Below are positions 15,301-62,357 of a stretch of DNA of 64,000 nucleotides, piece after piece (position 1 is the stretch's first letter; each line of letters begins with the position of its first letter). The position numbers and the translations under genes are program-made. The DNA comes from Styela clava. Taxonomy: Eukaryota. The DNA is taken from assembly GCF_964204865.1 (NCBI RefSeq), contig NC_135258.1, forward strand, positions 10,788,001-10,852,000. The letters are read 5' to 3'. The notes under the pieces are model-generated. The model was not told the origin of the DNA and did no database searches. It was given only the letters and a program-made list of their open reading frames with translations.

Positions 15301-18300
15301 TAAAAAACACGAATGGTTGTGTTACAGCGAGGACAAAAATGCACTTTTTTGTTTTTATTGCCTACTTTTTGCTACCGCCCGTGACTCACGTTGGTGTAAA
15401 TTTGGTTTTAGAGATCTTAAACATCTTTCCGAGCGTGCCAGGGATCATCAATCTTCTATGGAGCATCTGGACAATGCAGTAAAATACCGAACATTCGGAA
15501 ATGTTAATATTGCAGCACAGTTGGATGAAGGACGCGCGGTTTCTATTCGTCGGCACAATCAAAACGTCGAGAAAAACCGCCATGTTCTCGGTCGATTGAT
15601 AGATGTTTTGAAGTTCATTGGTTGTCACGAGCTGTCCCTCCGTGGGTCACGATGGACGGGCTGGCTCTTCTAATAGAGGGGTATTTTTGGATATGGTGGA
15701 ATACACCGCATCCCGAGATACAGTATTGAGAGATCATCTTGATGCCGCAACTGTTTCGAAAGGGACATCTAAGGATATCCAAAATGATTTGCTCGACTCA
15801 ATGTATAAAATTTATTTACAACATTTGGCTCTGGAAATTGAGAATTGCCAGTTCCTTTCGATTCAGTCTGACGAGACAACTGACATCACGTGAGTTTCCC
15901 AACTGGCTGTGACTTTTCGGTTTGTGAAAGATGGTAAACCTACCGAGAGATTTCACAGCTTTGTACCAATCGTTGATCGCACAGCTTGCGGGATATCGGC
16001 TGTACTGAAAGAAGTGTTACAGCCTTACAACGCGAAGTCAAAATTGATAGCTCAAACTTATGACGGCGCGGCAGTCATGAGTGGGTCGAAACATGGTGTT
16101 CAAGTTTATATAAAAGAAGATTTTGCTCATGCGCATTTTTTACATTGTTATGCACACCAATTTAACCTCATTATTAAAAATATGTGTCTTGATACCCCTC
16201 TCGTCCGTATATTTTTTGCAAATGTTTCGGGGTTTTCTTCATTTTTTTCCGTTTCGCCGAAGCGCTCTGACCTCCTTCGCCAGATATGTAGCCGCCGTCT
16301 CCCAGCTTGTGCACCAACACGTTGGAACTTCCAATCACGCGTGGTGCAGGGCGTGTCCGAAATTAGGTCTGAGCTCATTGAGTGTTTCAATGGCATTCAG
16401 AGCTCTCCGGTTTGGGACGAACGCTCTGTGAGGGAGGCGGCAGGTCTAAAGCGTCTGCTAGAAGATGGTGAGTTTTCATTTTTTTTCGCTTTTTTCTCCA
16501 CAATATTCTATCACGTGGATGTATTATACGGCGCATTGCAGTCAAGGCTAATGGATGGAGCGTCTGTGCAGTCGTGTATTTCAGACTTCTGCGATGCTGT
16601 ATCTCGTATCCGGGAAACAATAAAATACGACGACACATGGAGTGCTTCTTCACGCCGCGGGCAAACAACGCAGCGTTTGATTTTGTCTGCAAAGGAATGC
16701 TGTGACATTCTGGTGAATCAAATAGGCGATCGTCTGCGCACTGAACACCTTGCCGCGTTCTCTTTGATGAACCCCAAAAATTTTTCAAAATTTGCACGTC
16801 AATTTCCCATCCATTTGTTGGCTACTGTCTCCAAATTTTACCCCATGATAAACGTGGGTAAATTGGAAAATGAATTGCGATGTATATACAGTAATCAAAA
16901 TTTTTTGAACATCACATCAACTTGCGCGCTCTATGGGTTCCACATTGATAACACTCTAGTAACTACCTTTGCGGCGTCTGCAAAATTTCTGGACATTATT
17001 TTGACGACGCCTATTTCTTCCGCCGACGCAGAGCGAACATTCAGCACGCTGAAGCGTATTAAAACGTATCTCAGAAACACAATGAAGCAAGATAGATTAA
17101 ATTCCTTGGCTGTTTTATCCATTCACAGAGACGTTATTTCTGGGATGCATGACTTTAATCAGCGCGTTATTGAGCATTTTGCTTCCAAGAAACCGCGGCG
17201 TGTTGCATATATGTTCAAGCAGTAGAAGTCTAGCAGCATATATATCTATGAGTGAGTGACGCATGTCCTTATCTTTGCATTAACTTTCCTTTCTTCATAG
17301 TAACGTTTTAAACCCTATTTTAGGTTTTGTCTGCTTTCCCGAAGTTTCTGTTAATATGTCATTGTATTTATCTGGGTAAATATTGCCTTTCCTTTTGAAA
17401 GAGATTTCAAAATAAACTATGTCTATATTTATTAATCCCTTGACTTGGACCGGTTTTAAAGACACTTTCTTATCGTTAAAAATTGTCGCTTTTGCCGATT
17501 GGTTGTTACCGATGGAATGGTTTTTATACTCATAAAATGATGGGAGAACTTACAGCGATCATCCTGTCCCCGTAGATGGGGGTGACTTGGTCCCGCAGTA
17601 GCTTGCCCCGGTTGTCAAAATGACCACGCGCCGCCACTGGTCACCATGATTTTAAATCCGGCTTTTGTTAGTATTAGGCGCCTTTTAGCACATCTGGTGC
17701 AGTGATGCCTTCATTACTTGATCCTCCAAATCAAAAATGCGTAATTCTTAGATGTGAATCTCAAAAAACACAGTTTTCGCTACGATACGTCCCCGTAATT
17801 GCCAAAAAATTTGCTGTTTAGTTAAGATAACTAATTAAATGGTGAGGCACTGGTTGTCATACGGCAATACTGACAGAAAGTTTTATTCGGAAATGAATTT
17901 ACACTATCAGAAACGGGTTTTATCAACTAAGATATTTTCCTGTATTAGTTTTGGGGCATTCTGAACTTTCGCTTGGCTTCGTACCGGTGAGAGGTCGTTT
18001 TATATGCTGCATTTCTCAACATGGGTTAAATGACACTTACTGTCAGGAGGGTGAACGTAGATTGAATGATTTTATAAACAAACGATGATATTTTTGGAAT
18101 CTGGGTAGAGTGGTGCTGACTCCCATAAGGTTGACTTAAAATCACTCAATCGAGTAAAAACGGAAAACAGATGATATGGCCTATTTAACATGGCCAATGC
18201 CTATTTGAAACTCGATGTTGAATCAGAATGCTTGGTCATAGCAGTAATCATTATAGCTACAGTATTCTGCTTAATAATCTTGTTTTTGTGGTTTCGAGAA

Positions 18301-40849: not shown

Positions 40850-42510
40850 ACCAGGAACAGACGGGCTGGAATCTCTAATGAATTCTATCACACATTTTAC
40901 GCGCTTCCCAAAAGGCAAAATGAATAAAAAATAATAACAGGAGACTATATTTTAGAAACACAAAAATGTGCCATACCAGGCAAGTCAATTCAGGACTCTT
41001 TGCGAAACATTCAAACCGTTCGGGAATATTGTAAAACTCATCACACACTATGCTACAATGTCAGCTTTGATCAAGAAAAAGCGTTTAAACGAGTAAATCA
41101 AAAATTCCTATTTGAAATTATGGAGATAATATAATAATACAATACAAAAATACAAAAGCTAATCAAAGAAATGAATAATAACATATTTAGACAAATCTAT
41201 GGAACAACAACTGATAAAATATAGAACAGCAGAGGAATAAGGTAATAAACAAACGAACATATTAATCAAAGAATTTACCTTACTTTGTTTACCTCAAACA
41301 CAATGTCATTTTAAACTAGTTTGCGGACGATAATACCACCTTTGCTGCCACTATACCGGACATAGCAGAAGAATAGCATAGCATGGAATTTGAAAAATAT
41401 GAGAAGACAACTGATCAATGTCTTAACGACACAAAACAAAAGTCTTGTGCTCAAATACGTTAGCCAAGAAAAGAACACAACATACTCATTACGTAAAATA
41501 CGTATGCAAAAACAATAAGATATTAGAAAAAAAATATTTGACAAAGACCACGTGACAAAAACACGTAATTAGTTACACATCGTTCGGTAAACTGCAAATA
41601 TTAAACGCGCTGTGCATATCACAAATAATTAACCATGTCAAAATAATCCCGATCCCTACTTGGTAAAGAAATAAATTCAATAAAATAGTCTTTGAATTTC
41701 TGTGGAAAAAATAATAAAACTAATAAAACAAGATAAATTAATATGAAGGCTTGTAATGGAGGAATTGGAATACCACGCATAAATAGCAAAAACGATAAAA
41801 AGTAAAAATAATGAAAAAACCGGACCATCCTAATGAAATCTGACACACTGTTGAACGTTATAAATTGAGAACGATAACCAACAAAATTAACAAAGAAATT
41901 TACACCAACCAGATGCCACACCACGATAAGCAACCAGTAATATGGAAAAATATTTGAAAAAGTTTGAACTACTAACGAGGAATAGGGAACAATCTCTCTC
42001 AAACAGTTATAGCAAAAAACATTTGAACTAAATTTGGCCATAAAGAACAAAAAGATAAACAAAGACATAAATTGGAAAGAAGTTCTAGAATGAGAAAGGG
42101 ATGTAAACAATTTTAACAAATAAAGAGAAAATAATTTCTTATAGATTGGCGCACGACGGAATACTGAATGGTCAGAAAAGAGAAAAGATTCAATTGATTG
42201 CATTCAATTGGAGAAAAAAGAGTAGCTTTATTTGTCATTTTTTTAATAGTAAACAAGACAACTCTGAACATTTATTAACAGAATGCCTCTTTACATGGTG
42301 AATAATGTATAACATCCAAAATATATTAAATACAGTATTCTGAATACATCATCCTTTTTTGAATGAGACAATCTACTACGATAATTATATAGGAGAAAAA
42401 CAATTAATAGCGAAAATAACAGTAAACATTCTGAAGGCTGAAATATGCAATTTCAGGAAAATCAATTAATCAATCAAGAAAATCAAATTAAAACCGTGGG
42501 CACCAAAAAA
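40850..42510 (+). mobile_element. Decayed non-LTR retrotransposon (L1/Tx1-type) ORF2 fragment
   Basis: ~40940-41125 translates as ETQKCAIPGKSIQDSLRNIQTVREY...SFDQEKAFKRVNQKFLFEIM (RT motif DQEKAFDRV). GGIGIP at ~41758. Decayed zinc-knuckle remnant (C...EHLLTEC) at ~42235-42286. A-rich sense strand with many stops and frameshifts. Boundaries approximate. Confidence 0.8.
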
Positions 42511-43703: not shown

Positions 43704-46700
43704 TCATAAATATGCTTTTCGCTTTTCTCCAATGCGACGTTTGCATAGCGGACAGTCTGAAATAGAATTTGAGCATTCTTCACAGCAGCAGACGTGTCCA
43801 CATGGAGCGAAGTACATATCTTTACTCCGATCCCTACACACTACACATCCAACCGACGCGTGTCCCTCGGCTGTAAATACAAATATGATTAGACTGTGGC
43901 GTGCATATCGTATGTGGGAATGCTTAAGTTTATTCATGGTTATCTTACGCAAAAATAAACCACATAGAATACAACAAATATAAACAAAAATATGTTACTT
44001 GTTTTCAACGAAAATTTGGATTGCATACATTATAATTTGAATTTGTTGGACTGAAATTAAAAGGGCCCCGAACGTTGCAAAGTTAAACTGCCTATTAACA
44101 CTTACATTCACTCATATTTATAAATAAATATAGTACTACAACATGAATTTTAGCAGCAATAAAGATCCAAAAATGTGACTTCGTGTCATCTATTTCTCTG
44201 AAACCATCGCTTACCGAGTTCCTAAAATTGGCATTCACACAAACCTATTTGTTGCCCCTTGTAATATTGGACACGAAATGTACATATGGATCGTTATGGG
44301 GAATTATGGAAGAAGTCGTTAAAAAGCTTTTTTATGGGTACATAGAATGCGATATTTCACCAAAAAAATTTTGCTGTTTCATTTTAAAAGCGGAAAATTT
44401 TTTTATTCCTTATTGCTCTACTCCCTCCCTATTGCTTGCCCTCCTATCTTTTTAGCAAAATTGGTGCTCTCATGCCGTACCTTTCGTGTTCATATATATT
44501 TGAGCCTTGCTTTTTTCTTATCATTATCAAAAACATAAACTACTCACTTCTGACAGCTGTTGCTGGATTGCTGGGGTTCCCATCTTCGCTAGTATCTACA
44601 ACAAATCATGTACATGGAGTTCGATTGGATATGATTATTAAGTATGGTTACTTATTACAACCTGAATTTTGAGGAAAAGCAGATCTGAAAACTCACTACG
44701 TGTGTTCCCTCATTTTTATCTAAAAAAAAACTACTTACCATTTCCTTGCCTTGTTGGTCACCCGAATCGCCTTGGCGCACATTATTATTAATATTATTAT
44801 TATACAGATATGAGCAACTTACTTGCAACTACAGGATTACTAGAGAAAGTGGGGTTACCGTCTCCATTGTCATCTGTAACAAATGACACAGATGTATAGC
44901 TTGTTAGAGATTATAGTTAAACCTGGACGGTCATCAATATTCTGTAGGCCTACATTGGATTCAATTCATGTGTGAATACAAAAGCGTGAAAAATTAGACA
45001 CTATGAATATTTGATTAGAAAGATATAATTAACATAAATACCTATAACAACATCGTCAGATATGCTATGCTCTCCGTCTATCTTGTGTTTGTTTCGGGCC
45101 CAAACTTCGAATTTGTATGTACTGGACTTTGATGGATCTGCCATCACATATGGGGAGTGATTGCGAACTGCTACTTCCTCGCGTGGGTTTCCGTTTTTAA
45201 TAGTTTTAATTCTATATTCCACTTCATCTTCTTTGTCTTCTTCCCAAGTTATACAAATTTTATCTTCCCAAACACAAGCGACAACATTTTGAACTTGTAT
45301 TGGAGCTGTAAATTGATTATTAAAAGGAGATTTCACGGCAATACAATATATATGTTATATTTTATACTATTAATCACATCACATTTGTACCCATAAACTG
45401 CAATCAGGTAATTTGCACCTGCATAATTTAGCGCTCATACATTTGTACTCACATATTTTAGCACACATGGATACATTCTAATTTTTCAAGTTTCACTTTC
45501 ATTTATAATACACAAATCTTGTCCCATGTAGAATGGTCTGTAATATTTACTGATTTATTAGGTAAAATGTATTTCCAGGATATTTACGGTGATTTTCACG
45601 AGATCTTGAAGAATGTAAATTCACTCAATTTAAAAAATAAATTCACTGGCTCTTTTCGGTAAATATTACCAAGGATTTTGAATTGTGACAATGAGTGCCG
45701 GAAAAGGTGGAAAGATCACAAGTAATATCCTGTGACATTTACAGGTGATCCATGGTAATTTCAGTAAGAAATTTTTGTTCATTACGCTAGAATGGAGGTA
45801 ATTTTTACCGATGCATGGACGATTCCCGGTAAAAAAAAATTCTGGAGTGATACTCACCAGTAAAAATTGTCTCAGATTCTGTGTATTTACTGCGTCGATT
45901 ATTGATTACAGCACACACTCTGAAACTGTATTCCGTAGATTTTCTCAAATTATCAAATCTATGTGTGGATCTTTCTGTCGTTATGACTTCTTTCTCTTGC
46001 TGACATTTCATTACAACTAGACGATATGTTGCAATCCCACCATCTTTGTTACCATCCCATGAGACCGAAATATCTCTTCCACAACGTGCTATCTTTTTAT
46101 TCCTTGGTGCACTCGGATCTCAAAATAAATACATATTTATTAGCTGACGAGTAGTTAATGTTTTTTCGAGATTTTAGAAAGGATACTCATTGATTTGAAC
46201 AATTAAATTTAACGATCAATAATTGAACAAGATTGTCAACTCGCATCAAATGCTGGACTTTATATCGTTATTTTATCCATCTATAATGAGTCTACTTTTG
46301 CAGGCAGATCATTAAAGAAAGTTTATATGATCATTTTAGTTCAAAATTCCTGATGCGTCTTCGGCTAAACATATATAGGCATAATAATTTCTTATAATAG
46401 TTGTTTTATTTAGATTAAGCAGCAATACGAGGTATCTCGTACGCTGAATCGCTTTTACCCCAGTCACATATACGTCTAATAAGATACAGTATTAGACTCC
46501 AGAACTCTGAAGTGAAATGCTAGTTCTAAGTGTATGAAATACCGGCCGATTTTGAGCTGAAGTACCTGTGAAAATTTTTCTTGAACACGCGCCGACTCCA
46601 GAATTGTATCCATTGTTGGCGATTACTTCAAAGTGATAACGCGTAGCGGGGAGAAGATTTTCAAACTTCCAAATTGTGTTTTCGATCCAATCTGATGTTG

Positions 46701-48629
46701 TTCTACCATTATCGCATACAGCCGCGACCTTATATCTTATAATGTATTTATCCACAACAGGTTGCCATTCCGCAGTAATATTACCATTCGCCTTTTTTAC
46801 GATGACACCAGTAACTTTTTTTGGACCTTGAAAGCAATGTTAAAATCGAACATTTTTGAGTTTTAATTAATTCAGTCATGCTAAAAAGTTATCGGAATCT
46901 ACAAACATATAAATTTCAGTAGATTGATCAGTGGTATGATTGTAGGCAGCATATATCTTACAGCACCAAATCAAAAATGTTACTGGAGTAAATTTATCGG
47001 TACCAACAGGTTTGTGTTCACATATTCGCGACATGCTTGGTGCCACAATTGGTGCCACATTGATATGCGATTGAGACCACGTTAAAGCAAGTGAGATCAC
47101 GCACCAAATCAGTTTTATAACGCTGATATCACCTACCAAAGTGGCACCCAATTATGATGTACATATACTAATTAGTGAAAGTTGGTTGATTTTTAAACTA
47201 TTCCAGAACCGCCTACACTTCCAAAACGTCAATCCTCCAAAAACTCAATCTCTCCAAATCATTCACCTGTTATCACAGATTCGAATGTTGAGTATTCTCC
47301 AGTTCCCCATTTATTTTCTCCCCTAATTCTGAAAATATATTTGGTTGAGGTTTGAATATCGGATACTATACACTGATTTTCACCGCATGAGCCAAGTATT
47401 GACCACTGATTACTACTCTTCTCCTTTTCTATCTTGTATGTTCCTTCAAAATGTTGAAGTTGATCCCAATTTAAAATAATTTGTGCATCTTTCGCTGTGG
47501 CTACCGGGTTTTTAATTTGTCCCGGACCTGAAAATAGAACCATAACGGTGGTTCCAACTATTTGATTTGTTAGAAACTCATTACTGGCATGGCGCTTGTT
47601 CAGTTATTTATTCGCTGGTACATTAATGAAATTCGGAGCTGAGATTGTTTGCTCACAATGCAATCAGAATCTTGTAGACTATTTTATATTTATCATACCT
47701 AAAGTCCATACCATCAATTGTTTGGTGGATGTGTTGAATTTTGAAAACTGTTCAGGAAAAGAATTTTTTGGGGCTTCAAAAACAATTAGTTTACCTTTCA
47801 GAACAAAGGTTGATGTTTTCTTTTTTCCATGAAGACCATTGACTACACCATGTATTTCCACCGTAATTTCTGTATTAGTGCGTGCTCCGATACATTCATA
47901 CTTGCTGTCTGTTGTCTCCGTCAATACATCATCTATGCCACAAATTACCCTCACATTGTAATAAACAGATTCCTTTCCTGTTAGATCGTCCCACACGATG
48001 AAATGCTTTCCTTCCACAGCTTTGTACGTTATATTTTGAACCTGTCGTGGGCCTAAATAAAAAATTCATACCGTGTTTGTCTCCTTGTCTCAAACCCAAC
48101 CTAACTAAATTGGGCTAAAAATATATTTGGCATATCTGCCACAAACCGCAATTGATACACAACTCACCTGAATGTACAATACACAGGTCGGACTTGTTGC
48201 CATTTCCATATTCGTTACGAGCTTTCACCCAAAATTTGTATCGTGTGTCAGGATTTGGATCAGCAAGTATATATTGATGAACGGTTGTATTTCTTTTTAT
48301 GAGTTCATTATTTGAAAACACTCCGATAACGTACCCATGTGTCGCATTTCTATTTATGTTCCACTCAAGTTTAATATTACCATCCTTCGTACAATATCCT
48401 TTTACCCTTTTAACTTTACTCGGCTCTGAATACGATACATGTATGTATTTGTATAAAAAAAATGAAAACGAACTAATGTGGATATATTTAATTATCCAAA
48501 ATTTCAAATATAAAACACAGACAATTTGATACTACTGATACTACGCAGACCACACAAAATAAATTATCGGACTCACCAATATGCATGTAATAACTTACTT
48601 CTAAAATTTCTTAGGACACTTCGGCACAT
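43704..48629 (-). CDS. Six fibronectin type III repeats plus C-terminal RING-HC (zf-C3HC4_3, IAP-type) finger; putative E3 ubiquitin ligase (~619 aa)
   Basis: Minus-strand exons: 48629-48599 (MCRSVLRNFR, tentative start); FN3 exons 48425-48168, 48052-47795, 47527-47267, 46826-46566, 46118-45858, 45305-45042 (P..V/I start, strand-B W, strand-C Y, most with Y.F.V/I.A.N..G); microexons 44873-44823 and 44595-44548; RING exon 43870-43704 (CVVC..CGHVCCCEEC..CPLC..KAYL*). All introns are phase 1 with gt/ag; total 1860 nt, open. Confidence 0.88.
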
Positions 48630-48871: not shown

Positions 48872-49612
48872 TGTTACAGACAAAGTTTCTTTGTTTTATT
48901 TCATATATATTTGACCTGGGGTTATCTCGAGATAGATCGGTCATTGCACTTTGTCGAATGACCGTTCAGGAAATTACTCCCTTTAAGGCGATTTCACCAT
49001 CTGTTCGTGGGCAGGAATGAGCATGTCAGCGTAAAGAAAGTCTGTTATCGGCCTTTTCTTTTTCTCTCGTTTTTGTTTGTTTATTATTTTGAATAATTGC
49101 CAGTCGGCTGTTTATCATTTATTTCGTGTTAAGAGTTAGCTGTTGAAGAAGTGCTAATTTATTCGCCGCAATGAGCGGATTTGTTTACTTGTCCATCAGT
49201 TTAATAATAGGGTTAGATTCATTTTGCCTATCTTGTATTTTAATGTTGCTATTGTTTGCATCGTTTAGAATTAAGTATGTTATTAACCTGCCTGTTGGGT
49301 TGGTCGTAAACTTTAGCAACCCTCAATATTGTTGTAATCAATTGATTATTGGACCTCAACATTGCTATATCAATTTATTCGGACTTCTACATTCTGCAAT
49401 ACTGGAATCGTTTGTTTTTTATCACCACACAATTTCCTATTTCACGTGACTTCAATAGATTTCAATCATATTCAAGCTGTGGAGTTGTTAACAGCGAGAA
49501 ACCAGGCAGGTTATACATAAAAGAAAGTTAATAGCGCGAAGTGTCACCGCCCAACACGTTATAGGCTTCTTGTAGAGCCTCATCATAAGTACTAAGTCGC
49601 TTATAATCTACA
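48872..49612 (+). repeat. 5' LTR (741 bp)
   Basis: tgttacagac...ataatctaca; about 8 substitutions versus the 3' LTR by eye, no indels. Confidence 0.97.
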
Positions 49613-49693
49613 TGTGTTGCTAAAATATTGGCTTCGTGACACTCGCCATTCGTGGATACTTTGATCGTGTGAACTTGCGTTTATATTGTCGAA

Positions 49694-51397
49694 ATGTCGT
49701 CGTCTCGGACATCGATAACATCGTCGATGACGTCGGATCAAGCCAAGGCCGAGCGTAATCTACGTTTAGCGCAATTAAAGTTGGAGCGGGCGAAGAAGGA
49801 AGCTGCGCTTGAGAGCGAACGTGTCCAACTTGAACTTCAGCGAAGTATATTGGATGCGGAAATGGAAGCAAAACAAGCGAGGATAGAATTGGAAAGCGTC
49901 GGGGCAAGATCAATCAAAGGCTCAACGCGGGATGAAGAAGAAGAAGTGGAATCCCTAACCACCTTATCACCGAAGAGATTGATGGAATATGTGAAGACAC
50001 CAGCAGGGGGGAAGGGACTGTTTTCTGTGCCAAGTCACGATGCACAAATAATTAATAAACATAAAGGTAACTCGGAAATATTAGATTTTAATGAGGATTG
50101 TGACAGGAGTATTTTCAAAATTATAAATTCGGATCAGGATAAACGTTCTACTGCAGAAAAAATTGTTCAGCGGCCTATTTGTATGTTGGATCCAGGCGTA
50201 CCTCTCCATTATTCAAGTCCGGAGCGTGAGGTGCCTGTGAATCAAAGGATATTGGTGAGTCAAATTTTACCTGATAATTACGAGCAACCACTAGATCCAC
50301 AGATTAGTGCGGGGCAATTATTGTTGCCTAATTACGTCAAGCCAGAGATTAAGCCTGAGTTCAAATCTGCCAAGCATGATATCGTGTATGAGGATAAGGC
50401 AGGCATGAGGGCGCCATATGTGGCCAAGCCTCTTGCTACTGAAATGCCTAACATGACACTGAATGCTGTTGCGCAATTGACCAGGGCGATGATGGCGGGC
50501 ATGACTGATGTGGCAAATATAATCAAGCAGGGATTCACATTGCCTCAGATAAAACTTTCTGTGTTTGACGGGAACGTACTAAAATATCCTGAATTTGTTC
50601 GTGAGTTCAATAACTATATTGGGTCTTGCAAACTGGACACTGCTACAAAATTGAATTATCTAATATCTCATTGCACGGGTGAAGCAAAGGAAGCTATAAA
50701 ATCATGTGGGAATTTACCATCAGAAGAGGGATACAATTTGGCACGTAATATTCTTCATCGAAATTATGGTCAGACTCATTTAATCATTGATGCACATCTT
50801 AACTTGTTGTGTGAGGGACCCGCAATAAAAGTTAATGACATTGAAGCTTGGGATAAATTGCTTACTCAAACAAGAAGCACATTTATAACATTTTCACAAT
50901 TTGGTATTAGAGCCAATTTGGATGACTTAACTGTACTGAGAAAAATTGTCAAAAGGTTTCCATCTCAGCATTTGAGGAAATTTGCAAATTTGGCCAATGA
51001 TCGTTATAATGCTGGAGACTTGGTAAACTTCGATACACTCTTATCATTTATGGAATCTGTGTCAAATGTCAATCGATCAGGTTTTGGCAAACTTGCTCGC
51101 GAATCACAAAGGAAGAAGAAAGTTGACGATTCTGGAGGTACTCGTAGTAATCGCAAGATGTCATCCTTTCTCATATCCGAAGAAAATTCTGGTAAAGACA
51201 ATTCAAACCATAAAAATCATGAGTTGAAGTGCATGATATGTGACGGTAGTCATCAATTGTGGAAGTGTGCAAAATTCAAAGAAAAATAAGTTTCTTTCAG
51301 ACACAGGTTTGTGCGACAGAATAATATCTGTTTCAATTGTTTGATTCCTGGTCACTGGACAAGCCGGTGTCAATCTAAAATTCACTGTAGAGTGGAA
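49694..51397 (+). pseudogene. gag: BEL/Pao Gag (coiled-coil N-terminus, DUF1759-like core, three zinc knuckles), interrupted
   Basis: LPQIKLSVFDGNVLKYPEFVREF; knuckle CMICDGSHQLWKC; in-frame TAA at 51287-51289; then CFNCLIPGHWTSRC. The third knuckle CRVE|GCDLKHHTLLH is split by the nested element and resumes at 56194. Confidence 0.93.
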
Positions 51398-53535
51398 CAG
51401 TGTTAACTCTAAGCAAATTATGAGTGCGAAAGTGCTTCGCAGTCGAAAAAAAAAGTGCGAAAGTGCTTTTGCCGATTTTAACAAGTTAGGTGCCCTAGCC
51501 TTTCATATAACCCATTTAAAAGGGCATAGATACTCAAAAAAGCGATCCTCCGGTTAATATTATGAATTAAAAAGAAGCCTTTTCGTTAACCGAGTTCCCT
51601 TTAAGCGAATTCATGTTTAATTGAAACAAGCGAACGCATCGGCAACGAAATGACATCTGCTAACACCTGCCGGGACAAAACTTTCATGCAATGTATCACG
51701 GTGTCAGTTGCTTACTCGCGTAAACAGCAAAGACTTTCACATTTGTTACTCTTTCCATCTAACAGACACGAGCCAGGCTGGAAACCATATTAGTTACAGG
51801 GTGGATCGTTTGTACAAATCCCGTGCAAAAGAATCCCCCCCCCAACCCCCCCCCCCCCCCCCCCCCCCAAATATAAATAGCAATCAACTAATTAGGGTTA
51901 GGTGCGCTGGAAATTCAACTTTTCGATTTATCCCTAAACCTAATCTGATAATTATTAATTTGTGATTTTGAACCACTTTGAAAGTCGCCACCCGCTGTTT
52001 TAAAAGATAAGTTAACCTACGTTCCCTCCGAAATATTATGCTGGATACTCCCCTGTTTTAGGAGATAGGTTGACCTACTTTCCTTTCAAACCTTTTTCTT
52101 TTTCTCCGAAATATTACACAAGATCACTTTGAAAATCCTCCCGTTTCGTGAGCTAGCGTGACCTAATTTCTCATTTACATTTATATTATACTATTTCAGA
52201 GCTTACCCAAAGACAAGTAATTTTTAAATGTCGACATGCCTTGGTTTGTGTGCGAGTTAGTTTAAATCGGGCAGAAAACTTCATATATTGGCAAAATGTT
52301 CAGTAATGTCATGTACTTTCAGCATTCATAAATAGCACTCTTTGTAATGCTGCTGACTGACCTAGTATCAAATATTCGCATCACAACGCCACTTGCGAGG
52401 TTTCCATATATTTCAATTACACTAATAGGAACGATGATACCAAAGAGTTTTCTTTTGCGAAGGTACACTAAATATAACGAGGGTGATTCTTGAGAAAAAC
52501 ATGAATATAAAAAATAAACGAATGATATGATAGTGGATCCCAAATAATTTTGAGAGTGTCTCGAAATACCAATCCATTTGAATAATAATATTATTCGACC
52601 ACATGAACGCTGATATCCTGAAAATTAATGTTGAAAGAGAATTACGCATTCTCAGATATCGGACATCCAGTCGCGATATTCAATCGTTCATATGCACAAA
52701 TCTCACATTAATAGTAATTGCTACCCAAGTTTGTGAAGTTAGAAACCAACAAACAAAAAATAACTTATCCTAAAACACAATTAAAATTCAGTCGGCAATA
52801 AATTCGTCGCCAAGACGATGCAATACAAAGCAAAAAAGATTTGGTCGCGAGAGTTACGTGAGATGACTGCCGTTGTTTTTTAAGCAGAATGTAAAAAAAA
52901 TTATAATTAATAAACGGGAGTTACGACGCCCTTCACACATCGTGTGTATTAAACTTCCCTGGTAAGTACTTTGGTAAGTACTATTATTATTGTACTTATA
53001 CACCTGTTGGAGTATTTCGGACAATTTTGAATTTAAAATAAATGAAAACCCGACATATAATAATGACGCAAAAGTAAAATGAACATTTATTGAAAAAGTT
53101 ATTATTTAAGAAAGACAACATGATCGTACAATTCCGCCAAAACCTCAATGTTCGCAAGTGAGATGATAAATAAATACTTCCCTGTATTCGATCAATTAAC
53201 TTTAGCGTATCGTTGTTCTGCCAACAAACAGCCGGGTGCAAAATATTTCCGTCCTGTGATATGCTCACAAATATTCTCGATATTAATATCATACCCTCGC
53301 GTATGTACTTTCTATTAGCTCTTTAGTGATCCCTTCCATCCTTGGCCAAGTCATGTTTCGAATATGTGAACATTTTATTCGACCCAACGTGGCCGGCGTG
53401 ATGTTAAAATTGTAAACAAGAGAGAGGTAAAATCAATCGCTAATTTCGTTATAACGGCTCGGCTCGTTTACGAATTGTTGCGCCTGTTATCGTCGAAAAT
53501 GATTACATTTGTTGTATTTTGAGGCATTTAAGCAG

Positions 53536-54805
53536 TAATAATTAGGGCATGACATCATCAAAATCGCCAAGTGAGATCTTGAAATTGCAAATTCCGTAAA
53601 TAAAATTGTGAATTATTCGGTAAGGAATTCAGCTTTAATGACCGTCGGGGTATTGTTTTGTTGAAAATTATTATTAATGTGAGAGCGCCAAAAACATACA
53701 GTCCATACCGATGCGACTGCAATTTATATGGTCGCAATTGGTCTGGCGCGTTTATTAATAGTGTAAAATAAATTAAACGAATATCAATTATAACCAAGCC
53801 TGTCAGCGTGTTTATTTTCTGTTGGCAGGAATCATAATATACCATCTTGAGACAAATTCACTCCTATTACAAAATCTTAATTTTCAGTTATTATCGTTAT
53901 ACAAATAACGTGTGGCAACTTTTTAATTTATCGTCGACCAAAAAACCGCCCCACACTCGTCCAAACGTGTGTCGAGCTTGAACGACAGGAACAGATTTAT
54001 CGACGACCTTAATTAGGGAAAATATGCATTTTATTGGGAATGCAAAATAAATGTAACTGAACGCATTTTTTTGTGATATAACTTTGTATTTTCGGAAACG
54101 GGTTGCCGTGAAAGGTAAAATTTGATCTAAATTAATCGCAAAAATGTTTTATTTTAAATGTAACAAAACACATTTTGCGATATAATCTTGTATTTTCGAA
54201 AACGGGTGTCCTGGAAAGTAAAATATGATCTAAATTAATCGCAAAAATGTTTTATTTTAAATGTAACAAAACACATTACAACTGTATTTTCGGATACCGG
54301 GTGTCATGAAGAGTAAAATATGATCTGAATTAACCGTAAATAATGTTTCATTCCAAATGTATCATAACGCATTTTTTGCGATATAACTTTGTATTTTCGA
54401 AAACGGGGCGTAACGAAAATTATTAATCTAATGTTTTATCTATCGTCTAACTAACGTCAAACACATCATTTTCGGGGAGAACTCTAGCCCGCGAAACGTC
54501 ATTTAATTTAAAATAGAGAATGTTTCACGCATTTCAAAACGGAAAATCACCTGTAAGTGGACGGGAATTCAACCATCCGGATTCAGTATTCTATACCCCC
54601 GTGTCAGAACTTTCTGAAGAATGGAACAAAGAACATGTCAAACCGCCGTGGAAGAAGGGGGAGTATTTTTTGCACTAATAATTAGGGCGTGACATTATCA
54701 AAATCTTCAAGAAACTGGTGAATTTGCAAATTCCCTAAATAAAATTGTGAATTGCTTGGTAACATTTTAGCTATAATCATCGCCGGGGTATTGTTTTGTT
54801 GAAAA
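53536..54805 (+). repeat. Dispersed direct repeat pair (~130 bp) at 53536-53667 and 54676-54805 inside the nested element
   Basis: Both read taataattagggc.tgacat.atcaaaatc...ttgcaaattcc.taaataaaattgtgaatt...ggggtattgttttgttgaaaa. Confidence 0.85.
54049..54415 (+). repeat. Tandem repeat, ~3.6 copies of a ~100-bp unit
   Basis: Units start aaatgta at 54049, 54156, 54259 and 54355; shared tgtattttcg.aaacggg and gtaaaat.tgatct.aattaa.cg. Confidence 0.9.
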
Positions 54806-56193
54806 CACGTTGAAACTTGAGGGAATTAGTTACAATTAGCGCCTGAATTCTATTAGGCACTCGAGCACTCGAAAAAAAAAGCACTCGAGCCCAATCTTTT
54901 TAGCATTAAGTTGCATACGTAAAATATCCTGTAAAAGAAGTGCTGTTCATTAACGTCATCTCGTCTTATGACCACGCAGAAATGCCTTTATATCCGAATT
55001 ATTCAATCACTATTTTAAATCAACATTCAGGATTGGCACAATTTCAGATTTGCGAAGTTTATCGCCATAGAAATACATGAGAAAGTTAATTATCGTCTCA
55101 ATAAATATCTGCATCACGGTATGGACAATAATATTACCATTCGCATAAAATTGGGACGGTAAATTTACAAATCTTGATAGGTAATATTAAAGCCAACGCA
55201 AATGTTAATTTGAGTCCTCAATGTCTTCAACAGCTGTTGCCGATGTGAACGAACGGGTAAACCCGAAATATAAAACTTCAATGTCCGCCGACCCACAAGA
55301 ATTCATATTTGTATAAAAGAGAGGGCGGGAATATAGATTACCCAAAACCTGGATATCGCCGCCAAAACGATCGCTGACAAGAACAATTAGCGATTACAAC
55401 GGAATTAACCAGTAAAAAGGCTTTGTTGCCGATTTTTCAATGTTTCCACCACGTTTATTCGGTACTCCTTAAAAATATTCGATTCAAAAAAATATTGAAT
55501 TTTGCCGACCTCGCATATCAATGAGAAATAGTTCTGTAAATATCGCAAAATTACGGAAAATGCCACTCCTTTCAACATTGTGATTACAATAAAATGGCAC
55601 TTAATAATGGTATTTTGTGAATTTGGTGATTTTGCAAATCTGTGACATGCTGCTAAGAGTTTCGTCTGATTTGAAAATCGTGCAGTTTGGTCACAATTCA
55701 TTCAAAGTGACTATAACACCTAACACTTTTATAGTCATTTTGAATTCATCGATATCATTGATAGTCACATGACTACTCTCTTCAAAGAAACGCACTGTGT
55801 ATTATTCCAACATCTGGTTTCAATCACCCGGGAGCTTTTGCGAGAGAAGCGGAATGGGTGTGCTTGTATAATAATCATATTATAAACAAGAATTTTGCCG
55901 TTAATGCAAAAGCTTTATCTCCTATGTCTGCATCTCATAGGTTAGAATTCCGGTAAATATCGTTATGATATGCATAATTGAGTTACAAAAGTACTAGTAT
56001 GTTACTTATTTGTCAACTTAATACTCGAAAATATTTGTTAACTTTGAATTTTTATTCCATTCAAAATCAGAAAAAAGTGCTATTTCTCTTCAAAATCGGA
56101 AAAAAGTGCTATTTCGCAGTCCCTAAAAAAAGTTGCGAAAGTGCTTCGCAATTTTCGCAAAAAAGTGCGCTAATAGTGAACACTGGAGTGGAA

Positions 56194-56788
56194 GGCTGTG
56201 ACCTAAAACATCATACGCTGTTACACTTTAAACATTCAAAGAATGGACGAAAAAACGCTAAAGTTGACTTGAATAAATCAACTGTCGACGCTCGGTCTGA
56301 GGAGCATGGGGACGTTCATCATCGAAGGAGGCCGGGTCTGAACCAGTTGAAGAGGCCGGGACTCGTGTTTTATCGTCATTTTGTTCATCAAGAGAGACAA
56401 CATCACATATTCGTAGAAAGGTAGTACCAGTTAGATGTTGGGGATCGGATGGCCGATCTTGCGACACGTATGCCTTTCTAGATGATGGTTCTGATGTATC
56501 GCTATGTACAAATGATTTGATGAAGAGGCTTGGCATAAAAAGTGTCAAAGATGAAATTGTTTTGAAAACCTTGGGTGGTGTCGTTAAGACTGACAGTGCT
56601 CGAGTATCATTGAAACTTCGTGGATTGCGTGAAGTGCATTCAATTCACATCAAAGACGTCAGAGTTCTAGATAGACTTCCGTTCCATCCGATCTGGAGAT
56701 TAACATTCCTACAAATGCTGATTCGTTAAGATGCAATCACATTCGGGCCCTGAATTTTCCAACGCTTGAAAATGCCAAAGTTGAGATT
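56194..56788 (+). pseudogene. BEL/Pao Gag C-terminus and aspartic protease, frameshifted
   Basis: GCDLKHHTLLH, then after a frame change RKVVPVRCWG...TYAFLDDGSDVSLC (protease active-site motif). A second frame change near 56680 precedes ...KVEILVGVD. Confidence 0.88.
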
Positions 56789-59700
56789 TTGGTAGGCGTG
56801 GATGCTACGGAGGTGCATGTAATTTCTGGGATGAGACGTGGGAAAAAGGGTCAACCATATGCCGCAAGAACAGCTCTAGGCTGGGCGTTGTTTGGTCCTG
56901 ATGATACTTACAATCAGTGCGATGAATCTCATGTTGACAATATTTCATGGATTTCTTTGAACAATGACAAACTGCATGAGCAAATGGAGAAAGCGTTCGA
57001 AACAGAGTTTTCAGGTTGCGATGCATTCGATACTGCTCCTTCAATAGAAGATAAGGCTGCATTATCAATCATGGCAAATACCATCTGTAAAGTGGATGGT
57101 CATTATCAAGTGAGCATTCCTTGGAAAAGTAAAGATCCGAAATTGCCAAATAATATAAAAATTGCTGAGTCACGTCTTACCAATTTAAAGAAAAGATTGC
57201 TTCGTGATCCAGAATTGCATGATAAATATAAGAAGAAAATGGAAGACTACATATCGAATGGGCATGCAAGTAAAATTTCAAATGACAAGTTGAAACACAC
57301 CAAGAAGACGTGGTATCTTCCTCATCACTGCACAGGAGGAAAGTTTCGGATTGTTTTCGATGCTTCTGCTAGATACCAAGACACATCTCTTAATGACAAT
57401 ATTCTATGTGGACCTTCTCAAACTAATTCGCTAATTGGTGTCTTATCAAGATTTCGACAAGAAAAGATTGCTGTGGTTGCTGATATCAAAAGTATGTATC
57501 ACCAGGTTCTGGTTACACCTGAAGATCGCGAAGCTTTGAGATTTTTATGGTGGCCAGATGGTGATCTCAAACAACCAGTAGCGGAGTATCAAATGAACGT
57601 TCATCTTTTTGGTGGAAATTGGTCGCCAAGTGTTGCATGCTACGCTTTAAGACGGGTAGCTGAAGATAATGCAAACCATGAAGATGAAGAAACCTTAAAT
57701 GCGATCAGAAAGAGTTTTTATGTCGATGACTTGGAACGATCTGAGCTGACTGTTCCTCTTGCATTAAAACGAATTAAGGAAGTTTTCGGTTTATTGGAAA
57801 ATGGGGGTTTCCATCTTTCGAAGTTTTCCAGCAATAGCATTGAAGTTATGAATTCTATACCTGAAGTTGACAGAGCTGTTTCATCAGTGAATTTAAATCT
57901 TGACAAAGTGTCATCGCAAAAGGTACTCGGACTGTCTTGGAATATTCCACTAGATTCTTTTGTATTTGAAGTTGATATTCAGCAGAAACCATATACTCGG
58001 AGGGGATTGCTCTCAATGCTGAGTCAAGTTTTCGATCCTTTGGGTATGCTGGGCCCATTCCTGTTGCCGATGAAAAGGTTATTGCAGCGTTTGTGTACCC
58101 AGGATCTCAGATGGGATGATGATCTTCCTGTAGATGCAATTAAACTATGGGAGAATTGGATTGGACAATTATCTGAATTGACAAAAGTGAATGTACCAAG
58201 ATGGCTACATGGAACCAGGTATGATTCATGCAAGATGCAGTTACATACTTTTTGTGATGCCAGTGAATCTGGCCTTGGAGCAGTTTGTTATGTAAGAGTT
58301 GTCGGCACTTCTGGAGCAGTTCAATATGAATTTGTTGCAGGAAAATCTAGAGTAACTCCTCTGAAGGCAGTATCAATTCCTCGATTAGAACTGTGTGCGG
58401 CAGTGGTTGCATCAAAACTGAGTGCTATGATTCAATTGGAATTGGAATATAAATTTGAAAAGATTGTCTACTGGACAGATTCAATGTCTGTTTTACAGTA
58501 CATCAATAATGTGTCAACCCGATTTAAAGTTTTTGTTGCAAATCGAATTGCCACCATCCATGAACTTTCAGAGCCATCGCAGTGGCGTCACGTGGGAACA
58601 AAGAATAACCCAGCTGACATTGCTTCAAGGGGAGTAATGCCCAGGACATTGAACAAGTGCAACATGTGGTTTCATGGACCAAACTTTCTTAGTGATTCTG
58701 AGGAAAACTGGCCTGAAAGACCAAAGATATTACCACAGATTTCAGATAAGGATCCAGAAACAAAGGCGACACGTCAACTGTGTGCAACAACTGGAAAATC
58801 GAAGCCAGCTCTATTCAAGATCTTGGAAAGATATTCATCATGGATAAAGCTATGTAGAAGTGTTGCCTGGTTGTATCGCTTCAAGAAATGTATTCTGTGG
58901 AAGTATGGTAAGAAAGATAAACCTAAATTTCATCAAATTGGATTGAGTGTTGATGAACTCAAGATGGCATCAATTATTATTAGACTTGTACAAGATGAAT
59001 CATTTTCTAGTGAAGATGTGAAACTGACTAAATCATCAAGTTTGAAGAGTCTGACACCATGCTTGATCGATGGGGTAATTAGCGTTGGTGGACGACTTCA
59101 ACGCTCAAGTTTATCTCAAGAATCGAAGCATCAAATGATTTTACCATATCATCATCATGTTACAGACTTGATAATCGACCATTATCACGATCAAGAAGGA
59201 CACAGTGGTGTATTACACATCTTGTCTGTGATCAGGGAAAAGTTTTGGATAATCAAAGGACATTCAGCAATTAGAAATCGAATACGAAGATGTCTAAAGT
59301 GTAAAATCATGCATTCCAAGTCTGGAGCACAAATTATGGCACCATTACCAGAAGTTAGAGTAACACCAGGAAATTCTCCTTTTGCAAGTACAGGAGTAGA
59401 TTTGATGGGACCGGTATTGATCAAGTCTGGCCGGAGTGAAGTCAAAAGATGGGCTGCTATTTTCACCTGCATGGCTACCAGAGCTCTTCATATTGAAGTT
59501 GTCAATTCTTTAGACGCATCAGCATTTCTTGAGGCCTTTGATCGTTTTACTGCAAGACGAGGTTTACCTCTGGAAGTGTTCTCTGACAATGGTACAAACT
59601 TCACTTCCTCTAACAAATATTTGAAGGAAGGTGTTGAAAGATGGAACAAGTCCGTTCATCAGAGTCTCAGCCGAAAGGAAATAAAGTGGAATTTTAACCC

Positions 59701-60265
59701 TCCTGCTGCCAGTCATTGGGGCGGTTGCTGGGAACGCATGATACGGTCTGTCAGAAAAGTGTTAACTGCTCTTGTTGGGGAACGGCAGCTGACGGAGGCA
59801 TCTTTCTACACATTTCTGACACAAGTAGAAAGGATACTGAATAACCGACCAATCACAGCCGTTGGAGATGACCCTAAGGATTTGAAAGCATTGACACCTG
59901 GAATGTTGCTGACTGGACGTCTAGATCCTGCATATTCATCTGACATATTTCTCAAGGCTGATGGATACAGAAAATCATGGAAGTTGGTTCAGTGGATGGC
60001 AGATCAATTTTGGACTCGTTGGGTGAAGGAATATTTGCAAATACTACAGACTCGTCAAAAATGGCAACAACAAAAGAGGAATTTTGCTATTGGAGATTTA
60101 GTGCTTGTTTCGGATGAGAACTCTCCTCGTGGATCTTGGCCTAAAGCTCTTGTGGAAGAAGTTTATCCAGACCAATATGGAAATGTTCGTCGAGTTCGTG
60201 TTAGAACAGCAAAGTCGACTTACATTCGGGACATAAGGAAGCTGTGTTACTTAGAGTCACCTTGA
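56789..60265 (+). CDS. pol: BEL/Pao Pol: reverse transcriptase, RNase H (Peptidase_A17-type domain), integrase, DUF5641-like tail
   Basis: 1158-aa open frame: WYLPHH, FRIVFDAS, ADIKSMYHQV, HLFG..WSP, FYVDD (RT); HTFCDASE, SIPRLELCAA, WTDS, NPADIASRG (RH); H..H..CLKC, GVDLMGP, SDNGTNF, GGCWERMI (IN); FWTRWVKEYL. The annotated start is not a true start; it is part of a broken single Gag-Pol frame. Confidence 0.96.
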   Translation: MVGVDATEVHVISGMRRGKKGQPYAARTALGWALFGPDDTYNQCDESHVDNISWISLNNDKLHEQMEKAFETEFSGCDAFDTAPSIEDKAALSIMANTICKVDGHYQVSIPWKSKDPKLPNNIKIAESRLTNLKKRLLRDPELHDKYKKKMEDYISNGHASKISNDKLKHTKKTWYLPHHCTGGKFRIVFDASARYQDTSLNDNILCGPSQTNSLIGVLSRFRQEKIAVVADIKSMYHQVLVTPEDREALRFLWWPDGDLKQPVAEYQMNVHLFGGNWSPSVACYALRRVAEDNANHEDEETLNAIRKSFYVDDLERSELTVPLALKRIKEVFGLLENGGFHLSKFSSNSIEVMNSIPEVDRAVSSVNLNLDKVSSQKVLGLSWNIPLDSFVFEVDIQQKPYTRRGLLSMLSQVFDPLGMLGPFLLPMKRLLQRLCTQDLRWDDDLPVDAIKLWENWIGQLSELTKVNVPRWLHGTRYDSCKMQLHTFCDASESGLGAVCYVRVVGTSGAVQYEFVAGKSRVTPLKAVSIPRLELCAAVVASKLSAMIQLELEYKFEKIVYWTDSMSVLQYINNVSTRFKVFVANRIATIHELSEPSQWRHVGTKNNPADIASRGVMPRTLNKCNMWFHGPNFLSDSEENWPERPKILPQISDKDPETKATRQLCATTGKSKPALFKILERYSSWIKLCRSVAWLYRFKKCILWKYGKKDKPKFHQIGLSVDELKMASIIIRLVQDESFSSEDVKLTKSSSLKSLTPCLIDGVISVGGRLQRSSLSQESKHQMILPYHHHVTDLIIDHYHDQEGHSGVLHILSVIREKFWIIKGHSAIRNRIRRCLKCKIMHSKSGAQIMAPLPEVRVTPGNSPFASTGVDLMGPVLIKSGRSEVKRWAAIFTCMATRALHIEVVNSLDASAFLEAFDRFTARRGLPLEVFSDNGTNFTSSNKYLKEGVERWNKSVHQSLSRKEIKWNFNPPAASHWGGCWERMIRSVRKVLTALVGERQLTEASFYTFLTQVERILNNRPITAVGDDPKDLKALTPGMLLTGRLDPAYSSDIFLKADGYRKSWKLVQWMADQFWTRWVKEYLQILQTRQKWQQQKRNFAIGDLVLVSDENSPRGSWPKALVEEVYPDQYGNVRRVRVRTAKSTYIRDIRKLCYLESP

Positions 60266-60402
60266 TTTGTACATATTTATGAATTACACATTTTGTTTCA
60301 AATTGCACCTAATGTTAACTAGTGATCGGGAAGAAACTTGTCTGTATTTGTTAAAATGTTTGAAAATAACTTTTGTTCAATTCGTTATTTTGAGGCCGGG
60401 AA

Positions 60403-61143
60403 TGTTACAGACAAAGTTTCTTTGTTTTATTTCATATATATTTGACCTGGGGTTATCTCGAGATAGATCGGTCATTGCACTTTGTCGAATGACCGTTCAG
60501 GAAATTACTCCCTTTAAGGCGATTTCACCATCTGTTCGTGGGCAGGAATGAGCATGTCAGCGTAAAGAAAGTTTGTTATCGGCCTTTTCTTTTTCTCTCG
60601 TTTTTGTTTGTTTATTATTTTGAATAATTGCCAGTCGGCTGTTTACCATTTATTTCGTGTTAAGAGTTAGCTGTTGAAGAAGTGCTAATTTATTCGCCGC
60701 AATGAGCGGATTTGTTTACTTGTCCATCAGTTTAATAATCAGGTTTGATTCATTTTGCCTATCTTGTATTTTAATGTTGCTATTGTTTGCATCGTTTAGA
60801 ATTAAGTATGTTATTAACCTGCCTGTTGGGTTGGTCGTAAACTTTAGCAACCCTCAATATTGTTGTAATCAATTGATTATTGGACCTCAACATTGCTATA
60901 TCAATTTATTCGGACTTCTACATTCTACAATACTGGAATCGTTTGTTTTTTATCACCACACAATTTCCTATTTCACGTGACTTCAATAGATTTCAATCAT
61001 ATTCAAGCTGTGGAGTTGTTAACAGCGAGAAACCAGGCAGGTAATACATAAAAGAAAGTTAATAGCGCGAAGTGTCACCGCCCAACACGTTATAGGCTTC
61101 TTGTAGAGCCTCAACATAAGTACTAAGTCGCTTATAATCTACA
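60403..61143 (+). repeat. 3' LTR (741 bp)
   Basis: Near-identical to 48872-49612; preceded by the polypurine tract at 60392-60402 and followed by TSD GTACC. Confidence 0.97.
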
Positions 61144-62357
61144 GTACCCATACAAACCAGTTAAACATTTCTAGACTTTTATTAGGTTATTTTCTCATTA
61201 TTTCATGGGCTTGAGCACACATAATCAGTGGCGTAGCCAGGAGGTGGTTTTGCGGGTCGAATGCCCATAGAAAAAATAGTTGAGCTGTTATTACGGTTAT
61301 AAAAATAGGATAATGCACTTTTCGCTGACAACTCATATGATTACAACAAAGTTTTGCAAAAAAACTGATATATATATGCTGAACATAACAAAATAGGTCT
61401 TTAAATGTTTTCCATATATGCTAATTTCAACATGTATCATTACGCAATGCATAATACGCAAGCAACAGAAAACAAGCGAATATGTTTTTAGTTTACTTAC
61501 GGAATGCTTTGAATAATATGATTAGGTACATTTACATTGAGGAATTACTTAAGTCAACAAACGTCACGCGCTATCACTGTAATGTCAGAAGAAGGGGATA
61601 TAATTAGCAAAGTCGCTGTTATGCACCCGAATCAAAATCCCTCAAGGTTGAATAAATACAATACATATTAATAAATTACCGTTTAGATGTAGTAGGCCTA
61701 TACTGCCACGAAGAATCGTACTACTAGCGCGATGTTTTCCGATGTGGCAAACGCCATTGAAATGATCTGACATAACAGCCACTAGCAACCTTTGTATCTT
61801 TGATAAAGGAATAAACAAGTCTGTGAAGTCGACTAACATCAAATCAACTGAACTAAAGCCAAATGTGCCTTTATCATCACAATATCATTTTCATGTATCC
61901 CCAACAGCGCCACCACCAATTTTAATCGCAAGTATAGCCACGAGTTATTACCTAATATATATATTCTTTCTAATACATATTTATACCTTGCTTATCTCAC
62001 TTCACCTGTACATTTCCACATAGAATCCCTGAATTTAAATAACGTCTAACCGCAAATAAGGTACGATAACTTATTGTATTGTAAAAAAGTTGTTTTATAT
62101 TTGTACAATAATGATTGGATCAAACAAACATCGTAATTTTTGTGTCGACTGATCAATCATTATGTCGCAGACAACCATATTTTTTAAAGTATCTGATTCA
62201 GTTTAAATATAAAACGAAATATCTTAGAATATACATTGCGAAAGCTAGCTTTTAAAATTGCATCTTTATCTTTCCACTCTAACAGTTCTTGAATCCGAAC
62301 ACTTTTCCATCTTCATTTTTTGTTCTTCCCTTATACCGATATAGTTAACCCCTAGTG

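Follow-up and report, generated by a model that had tools for sequence, protein, structure and literature searches.

A Styela clava gene predicted to join six FN3 repeats to a C-terminal RING domain in a soluble E3 ubiquitin ligase

What kind of protein is built from six fibronectin type III (FN3) repeats, a short linker and a RING domain at the very C-terminus? This question was raised by positions 43704-48629 of a 64,000-nt stretch of the Styela clava genome (assembly GCF_964204865.1, contig NC_135258.1, forward-strand positions 10,788,001 to 10,852,000), which as a whole is called the window below. A preliminary description, made from the letters alone, had proposed an apparently cytosolic multi-FN3 protein fused to the RING of an IAP-type E3 ubiquitin ligase, potentially an innate immune sensor. 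With a confidence somewhat better than even, we consider the locus a real single-copy gene, so far found only in S. clava, for a soluble, probably cytosolic RING E3 ligase of 619 amino acids (aa). The gene is treated here as a lead and not as a new system.

The exons were located by hand. The gene lies on the minus strand and has ten exons with a total length of 1860 nt. All nine introns are bordered by GT..AG, and all junctions are in phase 1. In the order of transcription, the features are:

48599..48629, minus strand: start exon, 31 nt, with the ATG at 48629; it encodes MCRSVLRNFR plus one base and has the donor GTAAGT
48168..48425, minus strand: FN3-1 exon, 258 nt, phase 1-1; Pfam fn3 match at 4.5e-07 and 30.4 bits; residues 12-96
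47795..48052, minus strand: FN3-2 exon, 258 nt, phase 1-1; of the six repeats the one that diverges most, without a Pfam match
47267..47527, minus strand: FN3-3 exon, 261 nt, phase 1-1; Pfam fn3 match at 2.9e-06
46566..46826, minus strand: FN3-4 exon, 261 nt, phase 1-1; Pfam fn3 match at 1.8e-07
45858..46118, minus strand: FN3-5 exon, 261 nt, phase 1-1; Pfam fn3 match at 1.4e-09
45042..45305, minus strand: FN3-6 exon, 264 nt, phase 1-1; without a Pfam match of its own, assigned by hhalign against the sister repeats
44823..44873, minus strand: linker mini-exon 1, 51 nt, encoding DNGDGNPTFSSNPVVA
44548..44595, minus strand: linker mini-exon 2, 48 nt, encoding TSEDGNPSNPATAVR
43704..43870, minus strand: terminal RING exon, 167 nt, with a C3HC4 RING (C573...C607), the tail KRRIGEKRKAYL and the stop codon
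43642..43647, minus strand: AATAAA polyadenylation signal, 56 nt past the stop codon

The public S. clava protein XP_077972429.1 (619 aa) is equal to this hand-built gene model. It was found by HMMER with the RING exon alone, with 100% identity over the last 54 residues, and the exon translations follow one another in it in order, with a single split-codon residue between each neighbouring pair. Chance is far from explaining a ten-exon structure that is in phase throughout, and the RefSeq protein provides independent backing for it. The least certain exon is the start exon; an in-frame stop lies 17 codons upstream of its ATG.

The proposal of six mutually divergent FN3 domains on a 1860-nt spliced frame was confirmed by the exons, Pfam, hhalign and a fold model. 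Pairwise identity among the repeats was 14-27%. Four of the six (FN3-1, -3, -4, and -5) matched Pfam fn3 above the cut-off, and FN3-6 aligned with a profile of its sister repeats (hhalign 96.4%, E 1.1e-09). FN3-2 was weak by sequence, with only 23% in hhalign. Its AlphaFold2 (AF2) model was a sandwich of seven strands with a predicted local distance difference test (pLDDT) value of 83.6, and the best Foldseek match of the model in the PDB was fn3-4 of PTPRJ (TM 0.79); the alignment used for this model consisted of the six repeats themselves and leans towards FN3. By profile match or by fold, each of the six repeats was recognised as FN3, and no additional FN3 exon was found in the window. Titin fragments were the best PDB sequence matches. 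The full-length AF2 model of XP_077972429.1, based on a two-row alignment, was useless (pLDDT 29.5). Searches of the ESM Atlas yielded only generic FN3 clusters for the whole protein, with FNDC7 nearest and all below the threshold, and no match for residues 444-619.

The last exon matched Pfam zf-C3HC4_3 at 5.6e-14 and 52.1 bits (cut-off 27). A search of 1.84 billion representative proteins with the RING exon gave 4087 matches, of which the best 150 were inspected and 149 were analysed with Pfam. The zinc ligands C573, C576, C588, H590, C594, C597, C604, and C607 are all present and are near-invariant across these 149 relatives. One public protein of 1177 aa (P0001), which contains 21 partial RING-like stretches, outranked the self match only through its summed repeats. 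The RING stands at the extreme C-terminus and is followed by a tail of 12 residues (KRRIGEKRKAYL) that ends in KAYL; the tails of paralogues have 11-13 residues, with a few longer. Directly after the last cysteine there is a basic residue, K608. The RING matched the solved RINGs of XIAP, cIAP1/2, BIRC7, and MYLIP at 1e-7 to 3e-6, through to the C-terminus. A complex prediction with two copies of residues 560-619 scored 0.29 (mark 0.32), a value that speaks neither for nor against a homodimer. The closest single RINGs were LRSAM1-like ones from louse, Lingula and hagfish, with 52-56% identity. The term "IAP-type RING" used earlier is therefore apt in that the IAPs and this RING belong to one Pfam family, but by sequence the RING is nearest to LRSAM1-like RINGs. 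The linker between the FN3 part and the RING has 33 residues, is rich in Asn, Pro and Gly, and comes from the two mini-exons. Because the peptides of these mini-exons are alike and their acceptor flanks are shared, the sequence suggests that they arose by tandem duplication.

As the preliminary description had stated, no BIR, B-box or SPRY domain was matched in a domain search with the full protein (E <= 0.1); the same search found no coiled-coil-associated and no phosphatase (Y_phosphatase) domain. The protein begins with MCRSVLRNFRK, which is no signal peptide, and no exon contained a 19-mer above a Kyte-Doolittle (KD) value of 0.7, so that the gene model has neither a signal peptide nor a membrane span, again in agreement with the earlier claim. 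The protein thus departs from several known classes. Its RING is C-terminal, while a TRIM protein begins with a RING followed by a B-box and a coiled coil; it lacks the BIR, at least one of which defines an IAP; it has no signal peptide, membrane span or phosphatase domain of a receptor-type protein tyrosine phosphatase eta; and, judged on the gene model, it is not a transmembrane receptor E3 ligase of the PA-TM-RING or SRCR-TM-RING kind. Since signal peptide and membrane span are lacking from a gene model whose 5' end rests on prediction, the protein is probably cytosolic.

The gene is single-copy, because the best paralogue of its RING exon in the 377-Mb S. clava genome has 54% identity and no paralogues of FN3-1 and FN3-5 were found there. 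The preliminary description had proposed a search for paralogues; the genome searches with RING and FN3 exons showed no expansion among them. A word search of 5.8 billion proteins found a sole relative, "titin-like [Styela clava]" (P0151, 621 aa, 86% identical), which was recovered with the full-length query and with the linker and RING. The FN3-4 exon alone gave a blank; such word searches are limited by length and word, and a blank in them is weak evidence. The relative has the same ten-piece architecture, without any gap and with 89 substitutions, and an equivalent start (MSRSVLRYFRK). Because its best matches in this genome are the exons of the FN3-RING gene, the titin-like protein is either the counterpart in another assembly or a paralogue lacking from this assembly. 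XP_077972429.1 itself carries the NCBI name "receptor-type tyrosine-protein phosphatase eta-like". Judged by the sequences, neither name is apt, as FN3 similarity alone gave rise to both. As a separate observation, more than 35 dispersed or tandem FN3-like units, 27-33% identical to residues ~400-529 of the titin-like protein, were found at C2:0.39-5.94 Mb; they have internal stops, probably introns, and look like a large FN3 gene or a repeat family.

The differences between the two versions are distributed unevenly. Identity was 92-95% in FN3-1 to FN3-4, 83% in FN3-5 and FN3-6, 65-75% in the linkers, and 58% in the RING; in other words, a divergence of 14% overall rises from 5-8% in the first four repeats to 42% in the RING. 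Charge is altered by 46 of the 89 changes. Within the FN3 part, hydrophobic residues were changed less often than the others (5.1% vs 12.7%; Fisher p = 0.008). In the RING segment, 23 of 55 residues differ, yet all eight zinc ligands are spared (chance 0.009). Since the substitutions avoid the hydrophobic FN3 residues and every zinc ligand, fold and metal binding appear to be under selection. The tail aromatic Y618 is kept as well, and K608 is replaced by Arg. Strand columns (32 in 53) and loop columns (22 in 36) were substituted at equal frequency, and the comparison of XP_077972429.1 with the titin-like protein gave no sign of hypervariable FN3 loops. By contrast, the sequence of an SH2-RING protein of S. 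clava is identical under its accessions from the XP_039 and the XP_077 series. The difference between the titin-like and the FN3-RING protein, which may reflect an allele, a recombinant or a missing paralogue, is very high for one species.

Where else does such a RING stand, and behind which modules? Among the best 150 matches of the RING exon, screened with a local profile and, for 149 of them, with Pfam, FN3 was found only in XP_077972429.1; this result covers the top of a long list, and predicted FN3-RING proteins elsewhere are possible. The other proteins carry ankyrin/Mind-bomb, BIR, MATH, FYVE, GIDE, and similar modules, BIR being present in 11 of the 149. As close to the FN3-RING protein as the LRSAM1-like RINGs were two RINGs of S. 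clava itself (54% identity), those of the SH2-RING protein (P0063, XP_077967516.1) and of a GLEBS/CAP-Gly-RING protein (P0106, LOC120327001), and a tail ending in ...KAYL is common to all three S. clava proteins. The SH2-RING protein has 195 aa and the Nup98-GLEBS/CAP-Gly-RING protein has 458 aa; their loci lie at C4:18.02 and 18.23 Mb, and several partial copies of the RING exon were seen nearby (C4:18219643-18224132). The motif PCGHVCCC was tried as a mark specific to the RINGs of S. clava and rejected, since many LRSAM1- and MIB-like RINGs from other phyla have it too. On C17, two tandem genes have seven and at least four SRCR exons, respectively, directly upstream of a terminal RING exon on the same strand (11384774-11393751 and 11403675-11415252); their RINGs are 38-45% identical to that of the FN3-RING protein, and in the stretches examined no membrane exon of the SRCR-RING gene was confirmed. 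A cluster of some ten terminal RING exons that closely resemble one another (...EEERMCKICFSNPADMVF...) was observed at C19:14.79-16.58 Mb; another gene family of the zf-C3HC4_3 type seems to have expanded locally there.

In the SH2, GLEBS/CAP-Gly and SRCR genes, the RING is encoded by a separate terminal exon, and one paralogous RING exon (L004) apparently has the same intron position and phase, as determined by an acceptor heuristic. No FN3 exons were noticed within ~100 kb of the other listed RING exons on inspection by eye, with 150 of 779 FN3 candidates scored. An origin by exon shuffling, which had been proposed earlier, fits these observations: all exons are phase 1-1, the RING has its own terminal exon, and its kin stand behind other modules. 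We consider exon shuffling the probable origin because phase-1 FN3 exons precede a phase-1 terminal RING exon whose relatives end SH2, GLEBS/CAP-Gly and SRCR proteins. The literature search returned nothing relevant. The architecture, for which the preliminary description knew of no characterised protein, was absent from the 149 nearest RING proteins; the protein itself, however, was already present in RefSeq as a misnamed automatic model.

How could such a protein work? By sequence and by analogy with the RINGs of IAPs, BIRC7 and the RNF4 type, the RING would bind a ubiquitin-loaded ubiquitin-conjugating enzyme (E2). The E2 would be contacted by the hydrophobic residues in CVVC and CPLC, with K608 after the last cysteine as a putative basic "linchpin". 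Y618 in the short tail may reach across a RING dimer to pack against the donor ubiquitin, as the tail aromatic does in such RINGs. In BIRC7 and RNF4, the E2-contacting hydrophobic residues, the basic residue after the last cysteine and the tail aromatic mark active dimeric RINGs. The six-FN3 rod is the likely substrate- or partner-binding part and would be joined to the RING by the flexible Asn/Pro/Gly linker of 33 residues. The gene could have arisen when phase-1 FN3 exons were shuffled onto a phase-1 terminal RING exon, a member of the group that also ends SH2, GLEBS/CAP-Gly and SRCR-array proteins in S. clava.

The neighbourhood of the gene contains one large element that is not part of it:

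48872..61144, plus strand: BEL/Pao-type long terminal repeat (LTR) retrotransposon with Pfam DUF1759, Peptidase_A17, integrase and DUF5641

Its LTRs (48872-49613 and 60403-61144) have 742 nt each and are 98.9% identical; the element is young. A gag-like open reading frame (ORF) lies at 49694-51289 and pol at 56789-60265. Elsewhere in the window, a 438-aa ORF with a hAT-family dimerisation domain (15909-17225, plus strand) represents a remnant or a copy of a DNA transposon. Just downstream of the FN3-RING gene, a Phe/Leu-rich ORF of 194 aa without a Pfam match (41619-42203, minus strand) has probably arisen by chance in T-rich sequence.

Several points weigh against the reading of the locus as a functional gene for a soluble ligase. 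The near LTR begins 243 nt upstream of the ATG, on the opposite strand, so that the promoter region is short or recently remodelled; no other part of the gene model is as weak as its 5' end, where the start exon of 31 nt has little to define it. XP_077972429.1 and the titin-like protein are automatic models from one pipeline, and no full-length copy from assembled transcripts was present among the 5.8 billion proteins. No orthologue was found outside S. clava, and conservation therefore rests on one comparison. If the model is incomplete, the true protein might be a type I membrane receptor-ligase of which the first exon and a membrane exon were missed. FN3 arrays such as those of PTPRJ and FNDC7 are mostly extracellular, seven SRCR exons stand upstream of a related RING exon in the same genome, and the LTR element could part the gene from upstream exons. 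Moreover, the intron between linker mini-exon 2 and the RING exon contains a hydrophobic pseudo-exon of compatible phase (44195-44106). This candidate was rejected as being at chance level: its acceptor is purine-rich and poor, Lys and His interrupt the hydrophobic run, and 35% of random segments of the same length, drawn from the window, contain a comparable pseudo-exon. Signal-peptide-like first exons upstream were likewise at chance level, one of them being inside the LTR, and neither public model has such exons, both having the same short start exon. A missed membrane receptor is therefore distinctly unlikely in our estimation. We also consider it unlikely that the locus is a young, weakly functional or non-functional fusion that drifts, or that its FN3 and RING exons belong to separate mRNAs. 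The failure to find an orthologue outside S. clava, the recent retrotransposon adjoining the start, and the high divergence within one species, with its many charge changes, all speak for such a fusion. Against it, frames of 619 and 621 codons are open in the two versions without indels, the substitutions avoid the hydrophobic core (p about 0.008) and every zinc ligand (p about 0.009), all introns have canonical splice sites that keep the phase, and the stop codon is followed by a poly(A) signal.

The reading as a soluble ligase includes, as a special case, an intracellular sensor of immunity or of self and non-self, in which the FN3 loops would bind foreign or variable targets and the RING would signal or degrade them, in the manner of TRIM5, TRIM21 or LRSAM1. 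A repeat-type binder before a C-terminal RING parallels LRSAM1, whose RING relatives are among the closest; the divergence within the species is unusually high when set against the invariant SH2-RING protein; and in sister genes a RING of this kind follows SRCR arrays. This special case is nevertheless somewhat disfavoured by the single copy, with no paralogue expansion, and by the lack of loop variability, as strands and loops are equally substituted; the strongest divergence is found in the RING and the linker and not in the FN3 part. In our view, it is improbable. Equally doubtful, and bolder, is the idea that S. clava has built a small, species-restricted set of ligases by placing related terminal RING exons on FN3 or SRCR arrays, which are binding modules of the extracellular kind, and on the signalling modules SH2 or CAP-Gly, with the FN3-RING protein as a highly polymorphic recognition member. 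If this were true, the set would couple recognition directly to ubiquitination, the FN3-RING protein would act in the recognition of pathogens or of self and non-self, and balancing or diversifying selection, not drift or a lost paralogue, would account for the divergence of 14% between two individuals (42% in the RING). The two versions known so far differ to an unusual degree, which makes the gene a candidate for a fast-evolving recognition gene.

Compared with known systems, the protein resembles LRSAM1 in that a binding module made of repeats precedes a terminal zf-C3HC4_3 RING with a PCGHVCCC core. LRSAM1, however, has leucine-rich repeats (LRR), a coiled coil and a SAM domain, which are absent here, and the binding module of the S. 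clava protein consists of six FN3 domains. With the IAPs (XIAP, cIAP1/2, and BIRC7) it shares the Pfam RING family, the position at the extreme C-terminus, the penultimate aromatic residue and the basic residue after the last cysteine; it differs from them by the lack of BIR, UBA and CARD. Intracellular E3 ligases that contain FN3 do exist in the TRIM C-I group (MID1, TRIM9, TRIM36, and others). In these proteins, the RING is N-terminal and is followed by a B-box, a coiled coil and a single FN3 before SPRY, whereas in the FN3-RING protein the order is reversed, the FN3 domains number six, and B-box and SPRY were not found. Tandem FN3 arrays are shared with PTPRJ, FNDC7 and titin, from which the automatic names derive, but the phosphatase, signal peptide, membrane span, Ig, and kinase parts of those proteins are absent.

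Among E3 ligases whose RING is C-terminal (the IAP, LRSAM1 and MIB types), the defining feature is the module in front of it. We know of no characterised E3 ligase in which this module is a rod of six FN3 domains and which lacks both signal peptide and membrane span. A further comparison is offered by the SH2-RING, GLEBS/CAP-Gly-RING and SRCR-RING proteins of S. clava, which have a related terminal RING exon and differ in their N-terminal modules. Together with these genes, the FN3-RING gene may represent a concrete case of the recent invention of E3 ligases by exon shuffling in a chordate relative.

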